Below are positions 8,952 to 14,000 of a DNA stretch of 56,728 nucleotides, in pieces. The stretch spans positions 1 to 56,728 of the forward strand of contig NIVC01001083.1 in NCBI GenBank assembly GCA_002269645.1, written 5' to 3'. This stretch comes from Macrostomum lignano (lineage: Eukaryota). The notes under the pieces are model-generated. The model saw only the letters and a list, made by a program, of their open reading frames with translations. It did no database searches and had not been told where the DNA came from. The position numbers were made by a program, and so were the translations under genes. Position 1 is the first letter of the stretch. Every line of letters begins with the position of its first letter.

Positions 8952-9095
8952 TCACACCGGCCGAACAATGCCGTTGTTATTTGTTCGTTTCAGACGATCG
9001 ATAACTCGAATTAGGGACACATTGTCCGCTCGAAGCTTGCTGTTCTCAAGGCGGAGACGAGAGTTTTCCACCTCGGCTGATGCTGCGGTTGCCAA
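8952..9095 (-). CDS. MYPT1: MYPT alternative terminal exon LZ-B (second leucine zipper)
   Basis: ttttag|LATAASAEVENSRLRLENSKLRADNVSLIRVIDRLKRTNNNGIVRPV*; phase 0 matches the donor at 11137; four Leu heptads. Confidence 0.8.
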   Translation of the reverse strand: MATAASAEVENSRLRLENSKLRADNVSLIRVIDRLKRTNNNGIVRPV

Positions 9096-10131
9096 CTAAA
9101 ATATGTGATATTAAATATCTGTATGTAGATAACAAACTGAAATTTATAAATGCTTATTAAATCATTAAACCGTGGATAGGTAGCAACTTGATAAGCAAAA
9201 AATGCAAGCTTTGGATTTTTAGATTTACTTTTATTTTTTTATTTTCAAGTTCCGATAAATAAAATATCAAATCAAGTTATTCAACTATTTGAATAATCTA
9301 ACGATTTAATGGTTTATAGTTAAAATTAATAGTACAAAAAATTATTGAAAAAAACTGTTCGCGAAAATTCTAACTAGATTACGTATTAATAACAATAGTC
9401 TTGAAATATTAAGAATCACTAATTTAATATAATATATATAATAATATAATTGTTTCATATTTAAACTGCATCTATAGTTTTATATAATGTATAAAAATAT
9501 TAAAATATTAGCATATTTAGATAATGATGAAGAAATGATGGAAAATTATAATTATTTTCTATCATTATGATTTATTCATGCAATGCCAATTATTGGTTGA
9601 TAATGAAGGGTCAACTATAAAACTGAAAATCATGTTGTATACGATAAAATTGAATATATAATTTATTATATATGCATAAATGTCACCACAAATCACTAAC
9701 AAAACTACTAATTATCAGTATGAAGCAATACTGCAAAATTGCATTCCATTTCCAACTAACAAAACATACTTGCATGCGAAAACGCTGCTTACTACTTAAA
9801 CGAGTAGCCTAGTCGAGCCGACTTGAATTGCTCCGTTTTCGATTGCCGAATAAGCGAAATTTTCTTTTCTTATAACTATTTTAATTAGTTTGATTCAATC
9901 AAGAGAAAGAACTATGAATTTAAGATTGTACCAGAGCGAGAATAATGAAAAATTATCGATGAAAATTAATTGATAAAACTTCTGGCCACCGATTGCTGAT
10001 AGATTTGAGTTGGTCAAAAAAGCAGACACTAAAAAAGAATAAACGAACTGGAGCACAAAGACTCAGACGAAACTGTGAATACAAAGAGTTGAAAGCGGGA
10101 AACAGAAGAAAGAGTCCTTGTGCATCCTTAA

Positions 10132-10230
10132 TTATCGATTTTGTTGCCGCGATAGCCGAGCCACCACTCGAGCTAAGGCTCGGTTCTCAGCTTTAAGTTT
10201 CTCGTTCTCTCTCATGACCTGCTCCAGCGA
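10132..10230 (-). CDS. MYPT1: MYPT terminal exon LZ-A (leucine zipper)
   Basis: ccgcag|[32 protein letters not shown]; compare vertebrate [17 protein letters not shown]. Confidence 0.88.
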   Translation of the reverse strand, partial: SLEQVMRENEKLKAENRALARVVARLSRQQNR

Positions 10231-10472
10231 CTGCGGATCGGGGCGGTGCGTTAAGGCAGTGGGGTTCGGGCGTGAGTGGCCTGGCTTCAACTTTTAATAA
10301 CAATGTACACGTAAATGTAACCATGTGACGTTTGTACGTTTTAAAATTAGTGACAATAGCTACGTGTGTTAGGAACAGTTAGACAAGTATATCAACAAAT
10401 AGCATAATGGTAACGGACATATATTATACTGCCAAATCGGACAGATCAGCATCAAAGCATAGACAGACAGCC

Positions 10473-10533
<61 letters not shown>

Positions 10534-10540
10534 GGCAAGC

Positions 10541-10601
<61 letters not shown>

Positions 10602-10616
10602 GGCACTAAGACACTA

Positions 10617-10701
<85 letters not shown>

Positions 10702-10744
10702 GGCAAGCAGGCAGACAGACAGACAGACAGACAGGCAAGCAGGC

Positions 10745-10777
<33 letters not shown>

Positions 10778-10793
10778 TAAACGCGGAACGCAC

Positions 10794-10848
<55 letters not shown>

Positions 10849-10864
10849 TAAACGCGGAACGCAC

Positions 10865-10959
<95 letters not shown>

Positions 10960-10974
10960 GGCAAGCAGGCAGAC

Positions 10975-11018
<44 letters not shown>

Positions 11019-11056
11019 GACATAAACGCGGAACGCACACAGACAGACAGACAGGC

Positions 11057-11093
<37 letters not shown>

Positions 11094-14000
11094 GGCAGAC
11101 AGACAGACAGACAGACAGACAGCTAGCTGGCACTCACCCTGTTCTGAGCCTCATACTCGGACAGCCGTCTATCCACTTGTCGTTGCTCGCTCGACTGCCG
11201 CTTCAGCTGCTCATTCTCCTCCCGCAGGCGGCCATTCTCAGCATTCAACCGTTCGTTAGCGGCTTTCTCTTTCTCATAGAGTCGCTTGTAATCTAAATCA
11301 GACGATGACGGCGAGGAGGCTGAAGATGAAGACGCGGTTGCGCCGTAGGCGGAGCCGTGATAGGACCCGGGCCGGGAGCGGGACAGGCCGGAGTGGCCTG
11401 GGTCGGCGATGGCCTGCGAGCTGCCTCTGCCTGAGTCGGACTGGGAGGTCAAGGGTGATTCGAACTCAAATTTAACTAGAAGAAAGTTAGCAATCGTTTT
11501 ATTTAAGTTGAATACAGCTGGGTCTTGGATAGGGGGTTGTACGAGCGTAGCCTGGTGGTTAGAGTGTCTGGGGTTCGATTCTCGACCGATTCGGAGCAAT
11601 TTGTGTACTTGAGCAAGGCCCTTAACAGTGCTTTGCTTCAGTTCACCCAGCTGTAAAATGGGTGCCAGCATTAGCTGGGGTAATTGAGGGTGTGTGTGGC
11701 GACCCCCCAGTCCTTGGACTGAACCTTCAGATGCGGCTGAGCTGTCGGTTGCACATCTGGACATTAGGGCGGGTGTAATCAATTATTATTTATTATTAGG
11801 GGTAGAGCAGAGAAGCTGAGTCCCAAATTGAATTGGGTCTTTTGTGCCCAAAAAATCCACCGAGGGTTGTCATGCGATTCAGGTATATTCAGGCCTAACG
11901 ATTAGAAAGTCAGGTATATGCTGAGGAGTCTGCTGAGGAGTCAGCGGAATGGGACCGCAGAATTGCCCCAGCCCTCCTGTGAATTTTTTTTTTAGAGGCA
12001 GGGGGGTTTTGTGTGCACCCTGGCGCACTTTAAGCGACATAGGCACACAACCGGCGAGAGGCATTACTGCCCATTCCGCCGACTCCCCTGAGCAGGCATA
12101 TAAGCGCGCGGATACGTACGCAGGCACACACTCACACAGGAGTGTACAGCGGCCCTAACTTTATTTTATCTTTAGGCATGTACACTTCACTGCGCCTTGG
12201 GGGGTTGGCTCTCAAGGCCGTTAATTGCACGAGCAGAGCCAAGCCGAGATTCAAATTCAGCCCCAAATTAATGTGACTGCACTTGGAATCGAGCCTGGGT
12301 CGCTGGCACACCAGAGAAGCTGCGCTACCGCTGGGCTACGGCCCCCCGCCCTCCTGTGAATAGTTAGCTGCTATGATCTACTTCATGTATAGATACTGCC
12401 AAAGTGAATGTCAAAGATAAGAGATTGAAAAAAAATTAGATTGTTTGTACAGTTACATACCCGGCTGATTTTTGGGCACTTAAGTGGTTTGAAGTGGCTT
12501 ATTAGAGTGCTTTTCGAGTGGCGTTTCGAATGCCATAAACACTTAGGGTATATTCTGCTATTATAGGAATTGAAATATTTATATAAATTAAATATCCCCT
12601 ATGGATTGGATTTATAGGAATTAAATATCCCTTGATGTTGATTTCAGAGGAATTGAATACCCTTTGATGTTGATTTCAGAGGAATTGAATACTTCTTGAT
12701 GGTGATTTCCTATTGAATACCCCTTGATGGTGCGTTCAGAGGAATTGAATACTCCTTGATGGTGATTTCAGAGGAATTGAATACCCCTTGATGGTGATTT
12801 CAGAGGAATTGAATACCCCTTGATTATGAGTTCAGAGGAATTAAATACCCCTTGATGTTGATTTCAGAGGAATTGAATACCCCTTGATTATGAGTTCAGA
12901 GGAATTAAATACCCCTTGATGGTGATTTCAGAGAAATTAAATACCCCTTGATGGTGATTTCAGAGAAATTGAATACCCTTTGATGGTGAGTTCAGAGGAA
13001 TTGAATACCCCTTGATGGTGATTTCAGAGGAATTAAATACCCTTGATGGTGATTTCAGAGGAATTAAATACCCCTTGATGGTGAGTTCAGAGGAATCAAA
13101 TACCCCTTGATTGTGGGTTAAGAGGAATTGAATACCCCTTGACGGCGATTTCAGAGGAATTGAATACCCCAGTTTAAATTTGAAACAGTTATGCTAGTAA
13201 GTAAACAATCGTTTGAAATTCCTCAAGGTGGAGAACTTTCGGGGAAGTCCGCTCAACATGCCAGGGCACTCACAGAGTCCACAGACTCAGAAGATTTTGC
13301 AAAATATCTCGAATGCTTTCTGGTTGACTGCGGTGTCAAATAAGACGCAGCAGCAGCAGCAGAAGCAGCAGACGGTTGCTGACTAAACCCGGAACCCGCC
13401 GAACTCGAATGACGAAACGAGCCACGGCGCGAGGCTGGGGCGCTGCCACCGAAACTGCTGGCGCCACTAGCGCTAGAGGCGCCGCTGGCGCCGCTACTAA
13501 TGCTTAACAGAGCGCCAAGAGGCCCACCGTAGCAGACATTGCTGCCACCGGCAGAAGAAGACAGCGGCGAACCGGAGTGCACAGAACGAGGCGTTGAAGT
13601 GGCTCGAAACAGAGGCATTTCCTGTGGCTTCCAACCTTCTATAGATTGTCTTCTTCTTTTAGGGTCTCTCTGTTTGTGTGTTGTACGAACCGAAACCAAC
13701 CGAGCAAAGCAACAGGGGGGATTCCAACAAAGAAAGTCAAGTTCAGAAGATTTATCCTTTATCCCAAGCCCTAAACCCCTAACCCTAGCATCTGGATGGT
13801 CAACCCCAATGCTGTAAAAAAAGCCAATGAAGCCGAGCCAGAATCCGGTTTTAGCAGATTGGTCCGTCGCCCATACAGTCCTGCAGTTCGCTAATTCGCT
13901 TCCTTCCCCTACCTACAAGTCTGTCTGTCCCTCTGCCCCAACTTTCAAGCCAGAGAACAACACTGTTCGGTAATGTACACGCAAGTTCGAAATAAGGGCA

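Follow-up and report, generated by a model that had tools for sequence, protein, structure and literature searches.

Structure of the MYPT gene of Macrostomum lignano

We analyzed a 56,728-nucleotide stretch of the genome of the free-living flatworm Macrostomum lignano (contig NIVC01001083.1; hereafter the window), which holds a complete gene for a myosin-phosphatase targeting subunit (MYPT/PPP1R12). The last common exon of this gene is followed by two leucine zipper (LZ) exons, LZ-A and LZ-B, which are probably alternative ends of the same gene. All exons lie on the minus strand. The gene model comprises 10 common exons, running from 36824 down to 11138, plus either end; all junctions are GT-AG and in frame, and the predicted protein is 1033 amino acids long with LZ-A and 1048 amino acids long with LZ-B (Table 1).

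Over the N-terminal 295 amino acids, encoded by four joined exons, identity to UniRef fragments of M. lignano is 99%. The other best matches are PPP1R12A/B proteins of many animals, with E-values of 1e-83 and better, and the matched proteins carry Ank Pfam domains. The model follows the domain order RVKF PP1-binding motif, ankyrin repeats, inhibitory-site motif and C-terminal coiled coil; the RVxF motif that marks MYPT/PPP1R12 proteins is encoded in exon 1 as ERVKF, and ankyrin repeats follow it. Exon 8 aligns with the Artemia inhibitory phosphorylation motif (ESETQRKAHAK..RATRRSTQGVT; vertebrate RRSTQGVT) and with that of trematodes, and retains the Thr, a putative phosphorylation site. Judged by similarity and domain content, the gene is a MYPT/PPP1R12 orthologue.

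Two M. lignano database proteins, A0A1I... (P0001) and the MetaClust entry P0002, were rejected as guides to the gene beyond exon 5, being chimeric ab initio models. Both join unrelated upstream open reading frames (ORFs; 39572-39622, 50841-51389, 53655-54022) to ankyrin exon 3, and exons 1-2 are missed. A minisatellite in intron 2 (33200-34680) is easily taken for coding sequence by gene predictors; several of its frames are open, giving more than 400 codons of repeat that reach straight into exon 3. By eye, the exons also fall into two compositional styles. Exons 1, 2, 4 and 5 are AT-rich, as are their introns, and have T-rich acceptors (TTTTAG); exons 3 and 6-10 are GC-rich with C-rich acceptors (CCCCAG, TCCGCAG), and each of the two alternative last exons has one of these acceptor styles.

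Two alternative last exons share one donor

Read on the minus strand, exon 10 ends with ...LSEYEAQNR directly before GTGAGT, a phase-0 donor. Two exons can be joined to it. LZ-A is 99 nt long, with 32 codons and a TAA stop, and its acceptor reads ...GATCCGCAG/T; LZ-B is 144 nt long, with 47 codons and a TGA stop, its acceptor reads ...ATATTTTAG/T, and it encodes LATAASAEVENSRLRLENSKLRADNVSLIRVIDRLKRTNNNGIVRPV. The initial annotation of this locus had described the same arrangement, and its coordinates and peptides for the donor, both exons, their acceptors and their stops all hold when the minus strand is read and translated. Its heptad assignments are likewise borne out: LZ-B has Leu at four successive d positions, and LZ-A has Val at the first d followed by three Leu. 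So is its view of the pair as zipper A versus zipper B, not zipper versus none, as these are two homologous alternative ends, each of them a complete zipper. It had also cited an AATAAA downstream of each exon (9576-9571 and 7950-7945). Both hexamers exist, but they carry no weight as evidence, because they occur at about the chance rate and other hexamers lie nearer to each stop.

The a positions are occupied by Asn, Asn and Val in LZ-A and by Asn, Asn and Ile in LZ-B. Leu at d and Asn, Asn, Val/Ile at a are therefore kept in both exons, from which binding to PKG-I alpha can at most be predicted. The main consistent difference between the two kinds of zipper lies at the e position after the third Leu, which is Ile in B-type zippers and Ala or Thr in A-type zippers (both types are described below). 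Around the two exons we found neither duplicated flanks nor inverted repeats of the kind that would form docking/selector pairings; the search gave only chance matches in AT-rich sequence and the microsatellite that separates the donor from LZ-A.

Table 1. Exons and 3' features of the M. lignano MYPT gene, in window positions.
Feature	Position	Strand	Remarks
Exon 1	36567..36824	-	ATG at 36824; MyPhoNE-like RREQLTAW, RVKF PP1-binding motif, first ankyrin repeat; 61-62% identity to paralog P0121/P0134
Exon 2	34746..34901	-	ankyrin repeats; acceptor TTTTAG, donor GTAAGA
Exon 3	32812..33207	-	ankyrin repeats; 99% identity to UniRef M. lignano fragments P0001/P0002
Exon 4	29638..29712	-	MYPT model
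Exon 5	29465..29544	-	LMKESGKQP...YTSR; ends in phase 2; 100% match to tail of P0001
Exon 6	23174..23720	-	Pro/Ala-rich
Exon 7	17663..17842	-	by eye matches paralog segment ILTRMESLQETS
Exon 8	15400..16011	-	conserved inhibitory-site motif; 5' boundary is the least certain of the model
Exon 9	13274..13669	-	Ser-rich
Exon 10	11138..11440	-	last common exon; PRKG1_interact coiled coil begins here; end aligns with arthropod ...RKLSEMEEELK
Shared donor	11136..11137	-	phase-0 GT, AGG/GTGAGT
(AGAC)n/(GTCT)n microsatellite	10461..11122		about 166 units; most of the intron between donor and LZ-A
LZ-A acceptor AG	10231..10232	-	C-rich tract ...CCGCCCCGATCCGCAG
LZ-A, proximal alternative last exon	10132..10230	-	A-type zipper; arthropod A profile 39.9 bits
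26% GC stretch	9096..10131	-	candidate 3' untranslated region of A isoform, or intron when LZ-B is used
Candidate poly(A) hexamers, A isoform	ATTAAA 9885; AATAAA 9667, 9576, 9243, 9235	-	near chance rate; candidates by sequence alone
LZ-B acceptor AG	9096..9097	-	T-rich tract ...CACATATTTTAG; within the in-frame TAG bounding the ORF
LZ-B, distal alternative last exon	8952..9095	-	zipper with canonical B-type LIRVI signature (LRLENSKLRADNVSLIRVIDRLKR) and 10-amino-acid tail
First AATAAA past LZ-B stop	7945..7950	-	about 1 kb downstream; candidate only

Both exons encode homologous zipper ends

Each exon on its own matches the end of the Pfam domain PRKG1_interact (PF15898). LZ-A scores 30.7 bits (E 5e-7, profile positions 75-101) and LZ-B 21.0 bits (E 5e-4, profile positions 76-100), so that both align to the same last ~26 positions of the profile; the C-terminus of the A isoform as a whole scores 48.7 bits, above the gathering cut-off of 32.4. 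A tblastn search with the C-terminus of a mite MYPT recovered both LZ-A and LZ-B, and the remaining matches were all translated simple repeats. Zipper-exon profiles built from arthropods only were then run against all 7335 six-frame ORF fragments of five loci, namely the window and four others. Within the window these detected LZ-A (E 2e-10) and LZ-B (E 3e-4), and otherwise a single marginal match (E 0.52) to the coiled-coil penultimate exon. Both exons have a GC content of 51%, while the surroundings of LZ-B are at 26%.

The two exons are homologous and long diverged, with identities of 43% at the amino acid level, 48% at the nucleotide level and 36% at third codon positions, and no similarity was found between their flanks. 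LZ-B is not an assembly duplicate of LZ-A, given this low nucleotide and third-position identity and the lack of repeated flanks. Compared with the terminal exon of an M. lignano paralog, BOX15_Mlig002238g1, the nonsynonymous divergence of LZ-B (pN) is 0.24 and its synonymous divergence (pS) 0.86, which is saturated; this pN is below the 0.36 of the constitutive penultimate exon in the same comparison. LZ-B has therefore been kept as coding sequence, and the comparison with the paralog shows it to be a constrained exon that evolves under purifying selection.

These data bear on whether LZ-B belongs to the MYPT gene at all, or is instead part of a separate gene fragment, the product of a duplication in the assembly, or a downstream gene that is trans-spliced. 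M. lignano uses spliced-leader trans-splicing, the LZ-B acceptor is of the TTTTAG style, and the next downstream genes are on the same strand. An origin of this kind is nevertheless extremely improbable. LZ-B has no in-frame ATG, and the sole ATG past its acceptor opens a frame of 3 codons. It encodes exactly the missing end of PRKG1_interact, in the phase left by the 11137 donor. To this are added its low DNA identity to LZ-A (48%) in the absence of repeated flanks, and the deposited protein of the paralog, which uses the equivalent junction.

A-type and B-type zippers

A full HMMER search with the C-terminal half of the B isoform, whose best match was the M. lignano paralog, returned two recurrent C-terminal types, an A-type ('ENRAL-RVV..L') and a canonical B-type. 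Among its matches, those from Artemia, two trematodes (Opisthorchis and Calicophoron) and the monogenean Cichlidogyrus were A-type, and those from another trematode, Dicrocoelium, from the annelid Ridgeia, and from a tardigrade and a mite were B-type.

LZ-A reaches 39.9 bits with the arthropod A profile versus 29.4 with the B profile and contains the signature EN(R/K)AL-RV(V/I), with a 16-residue segment that matches Artemia at 15/16 positions. It is 65% identical to the A-type sequence of Artemia, and it shares the layout of A-type exons, starting in phase 0 after the ...EELK-equivalent exon, lying upstream of the B exon and ending in a stop of its own. By these features LZ-A is clearly A-type, the counterpart of the protostome/arthropod 'ENRAL(T)RVV' exon. 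LZ-B scores 19.0 bits on the B profile versus 16.8 on the A profile, a preference of 2.2 bits, and it runs 10 amino acids past the ...KLSK end point of the canonical zipper; the corresponding exon of the paralog scores 31.4 versus 26.9 bits, a preference of 4.5 bits for B. LZ-B thus groups weakly with the canonical vertebrate-type 'ALIRVIS' zipper. It is LZ-B, not LZ-A, that carries the canonical zipper signature (SLIRVI), although the separation of the types by the profiles is weak.

Related flatworm genes with a single zipper end

The paralog (BOX15_Mlig002238g1/Mlig001872g1; PAA86229.1 and PAA65940.1, of 865 and 873 amino acids) has the same domain order as the window MYPT and is 57-69% identical to it in the ankyrin region. 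The terminal exon of this paralog (P0121) is 75% identical to LZ-B at the amino acid level. The deposited protein joins ...YEAQER to AAQAEAELNKLRLENSKLKADNTSLIRVISRL (...YEAQER/AAQAEAE...), which is the junction proposed here for LZ-B, and its C-terminus reads ...YEAQER/AAQAEAELNKLRLENSKLKADNTSLIRVISRLSTQSAAT. The paralog locus (L001) contains only this B-type exon; neither its last intron of 1.28 kb nor the 10 kb of sequence downstream of it yielded an A-type exon.

The opposite condition is seen in parasitic flatworms. Opisthorchis viverrini (T265_08674), Calicophoron (P0123) and Cichlidogyrus (P0130) have neodermatan MYPT-like genes with an A-type end only. Their A-type exon, TLEKLRAESEKLRAEHRALVRVVARLNREK followed by a stop, begins where LZ-A does, shares 60% identity with it, and prefers the A profile by +15 to +18 bits. 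In the genes of Opisthorchis (L002) and Cichlidogyrus (L006) only the A exon was found, with no trace of a B exon. A canonical zipper is present in a trematode gene model from Dicrocoelium (CAH8648785.1); the two zipper types of parasitic flatworms reside in separate gene models with differing upstream coiled coils, rather than at alternative ends of a single gene.

That related genes have settled on one end, the paralog on B and those of Opisthorchis and Cichlidogyrus on A, raises the question of whether M. lignano also uses a single exon, with the other a silent relic. LZ-B could be constitutive as in the paralog, or LZ-A as in the trematodes, and no product of the 3' half of the gene is present among the protein collections searched. 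We consider this unlikely. In relatives, unused exons vanish completely; here, both exons retain an open frame between AG acceptor and stop, a 51% GC content in 26% GC surroundings, and the zipper core. The low pN of LZ-B against a saturated pS and the strong match of LZ-A to the arthropod A profile are likewise not what a relic would be expected to retain. Because the other exon vanished without trace in single-end relatives and both are intact in the window gene, it can be argued that both of its exons are in use.

The same exon pair occurs in insects, crustaceans and an annelid

The layout seen in M. lignano recurs in distant protostomes. In the insect Ranatra chinensis (L003), the ...SEMEEELK exon is followed by an A exon (TTTTACAG/QLQKLKADNERLRAENRALTRVVSNLTATHKKW and a stop) and, ~1.6 kb further on, by a B exon. 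The annelid Ridgeia piscesae (L005) has ...ELEEELK, next an A exon (LMERVKADNARLKEENRALTRVIAKLKKPTT and a stop) and, again ~1.6 kb on, a B exon. Both share with M. lignano the A-then-B order at the same phase-0 junction. The deposited models of these two genes use one zipper exon each, B in Ridgeia and A in Ranatra. The other exon is intact, with a strong acceptor and its own stop, but absent from the deposited protein (~13656-13751 in L005; ~31298-31387 in L003). A profile search of arthropods returned 120 MYPT proteins, 97 of them ending in the A-type and 20 in the B-type. For six species, RefSeq has models of a single gene with either C-terminus: Artemia franciscana, Schistocerca gregaria, Cryptotermes secundus, Thrips palmi, Frankliniella occidentalis and Calliopsis andreniformis. 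Judging by this distribution, the A/B pair predates the split of flatworms, arthropods and annelids. Because insects, crustaceans and an annelid have the same exon pair, it is best described as an old conserved isoform switch and not as a flatworm invention.

The initial annotation had instead proposed that the C-terminal exon duplicated and diverged in this animal, with LZ-B as a novel extra exon. A tandem duplication of that exon confined to this lineage would account for two homologous, adjacent exons in a species whose paralog has a single zipper exon. It is already contradicted by the other data and is now very unlikely: LZ-A is closer to crustacean and insect A exons (65% to Artemia) than to LZ-B (43%), the A/B third positions are near saturation, and the order, junction and phase of the pair are the same in Ranatra and Ridgeia, with both ends modelled in the six arthropods. 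Nor does the view of LZ-B as the novelty hold, as LZ-B has the canonical SLIRVI signature (again with the profiles separating the types weakly) and LZ-A matches the protostome 'ENRAL-RVV' type. LZ-B is, on the other hand, neither a dead fragment nor an assembly duplicate, given its divergence from LZ-A, its unrelated flanks and the selection on it relative to the paralog.

The comparison also bears on whether LZ-A might be an internal cassette, such that both zippers are included in tandem. A precedent could be read from the nematode Nippostrongylus brasiliensis (L004), where a predicted protein joins an A-like segment (...TENAAMMRVLAKLS...LDQS; 3028-3135) to a B zipper (3835-3918), the two exons being 700 nt apart. 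That model is an unverified prediction with a weak GTCGGT donor, and its exons may be either mis-joined alternatives or a genuine cassette. In M. lignano, LZ-A has an in-frame TAA right after the zipper and no consensus-like donor before it; by inspection, the only GT sites inside LZ-A are weak (GTCATG, GTGGTG). The A exons of the insect and the annelid also end in stops. A tandem arrangement of both zippers in M. lignano is accordingly highly improbable, and the window gene is better described by alternative last exons.

A model for the choice between ends

From the observed anatomy of the locus, the homology of both exons, their conserved layout and the constraint on LZ-B, we consider it probable that the window MYPT gene has inherited A/B alternative last exons, giving rise to two targeting subunits that differ only in terminal zipper, tail and 3' untranslated region. 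The single donor at 11137 would pair with either the proximal acceptor (10231) or the distal one (9096), as an alternative-last-exon choice. Splicing to 10231 would add LZ-A, and the message would end in the AT-rich stretch just downstream; skipping of the 10231 acceptor and its poly(A) site, with splicing to 9096, would add LZ-B. The C-terminal PRKG1_interact coiled coil would receive its last four heptads from either exon. The choice may be a competition in which each splice site acts together with its poly(A) site. Both acceptors are probably used in M. lignano, as lineages with a single end have erased the other exon and arthropod models use both. LZ-A and LZ-B may in turn differ in dimerization or partner binding.

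Several observations weigh against this interpretation. The protein collections searched contain no product of the 3' half of the window gene. The B isoform scores 28.6 bits over the whole PF15898 domain (E 2e-6), under the gathering cut-off. LZ-B is divergent, and is labelled B-type mainly for its SLIRVI motif, its location and its resemblance to the paralog. The arthropod A/B isoforms are computed RefSeq models, not curated experiments. AATAAA hexamers are about as frequent as expected by chance in AT-rich DNA (4 observed versus 1.6 expected, and 2 observed versus 1.0 expected). Finally, the core a/d residues and most e/g residues are alike in LZ-A and LZ-B, such that the sequences do not obviously point to a large difference in partner choice.

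Comparison with known zipper switches

The closest known counterparts are arthropod MYPT genes (Mbs/PPP1R12), for which RefSeq lists A- and B-type isoforms, e.g. Artemia franciscana X7-X11 versus X3/X13/X14, Schistocerca gregaria and Thrips palmi. These genes and that of Ranatra share with M. lignano a single gene with a phase-0 junction after the ...SEMEEELK-equivalent exon, a proximal A exon with a stop and a distal B exon with a stop; the spacing of A and B is 1-2 kb in M. lignano, as in the Ranatra locus. The genes differ in that the common exon ends with ...EYEAQNR in M. lignano and with ...EEELK in arthropods, and in that LZ-B (DNVSLIRVIDRLKR) is more divergent than the arthropod B exon, with an N-terminal extension of 6-9 amino acids and a 10-amino-acid tail. 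Moreover, arthropods have isoform models of both ends, whereas the M. lignano pair is known here from genomic sequence. In the literature searched on invertebrate MYPT zipper isoforms (Mbs, mel-11, Macrostomum), no description of the A/B pair was found. The pair is already visible in RefSeq isoform models, to which M. lignano adds a further case.

Myosin phosphatase determines how sensitive actomyosin contraction is to calcium. Whether cyclic GMP (cGMP)/PKG can relax smooth muscle in vertebrates depends on whether the MYPT1 zipper is present, and it is to the vertebrate B-type zipper that the zipper of PKG-I alpha binds. The vertebrate switch between LZ+ and LZ- forms of MYPT1 (PPP1R12A) depends on a 31-nt exon, E24 (= 23A), located in the intron before the last zipper exon (PMC5087845, PMC9367544); vertebrate PPP1R12A, B and C have all been reported with a B-type zipper (PMC5087845). 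The 31-nt exon and the protostome A exon thus share a location, but the mechanism differs. Inclusion of the vertebrate exon, an internal cassette, shifts the frame and deletes the zipper, whereas LZ-A is a self-contained last exon that substitutes a second one: it is 99 nt long, in frame and zipper-coding, ends in TAA and has no consensus-like donor, unlike a cassette of the vertebrate LZ+/LZ- kind.

Outside the MYPT family, the sole PDB match of the A isoform was the C-terminal coiled coil of Par-4/PAWR (5FIY; E 1e-4), and the same PDB sequence search with the B isoform gave no match. The Par-4 zipper (ENEQLKQENKTLLKVVGQLTR) is A-like, with the A profile favored by 10 bits. Par-4 is a different protein without ankyrin or PP1-binding region, and the likeness is confined to the coiled coil. 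A broader and rather doubtful scenario would unite these data. The A/B pair would have been present in the last common protostome (possibly bilaterian) ancestor as a true zipper-swap with two partner specificities; M. lignano, annelids and arthropods would have retained it in the form of alternative ends and parasitic flatworms would have split it between paralogs, with the vertebrate 31-nt LZ- cassette as a relic of the A exon and an A-like zipper surviving in Par-4.

If the two ends are used as proposed, a free-living flatworm possesses, at the alternative ends of a single gene, two complete zippers maintained by selection, a ready-made natural experiment on what the terminal zipper specifies in terms of A versus B partners. 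The pair also explains why isoforms of one arthropod gene have been automatically named '12A', '12B' or '12C', and it exposes a problem of gene models, as those with a single end lack an isoform, the annotated proteins of Ridgeia and Ranatra among them. The gain for M. lignano itself is mainly better annotation.

Other features of the window

Scans of the window with ARAGORN for tRNA genes and against Rfam found no tRNA or other RNA family. Just downstream of the MYPT gene, five ORFs lie in a row on the minus strand (1265-4820), each with an F5/8 type C/'NedA-like galactose-binding' domain (PF22633, E 4e-9 to 3e-8), which together look like a tandem-repeat lectin-like gene. Within this row, 1282-2192 and 3276-4187 are 98% identical, which suggests either a recent ~2-kb tandem duplication or a doubling in the assembly.

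A dispersed repeat of ~260 nt occurs in three copies with 85-91% identity (11531-11790, 23916-24168 and 55607-55858). It resembles a short interspersed element (SINE), and two copies lie in MYPT introns, with both orientations represented. The window further contains very long, strand-asymmetric simple repeats (45500-48400, 24900-27700 and 14050-15300), with a GC skew of up to 0.97 at 46-48 kb. Their translations run on for hundreds of codons as GERREKR.../SLLSPLP... or SVSQ..., and yield spurious coiled-coil-like matches in tblastn searches.

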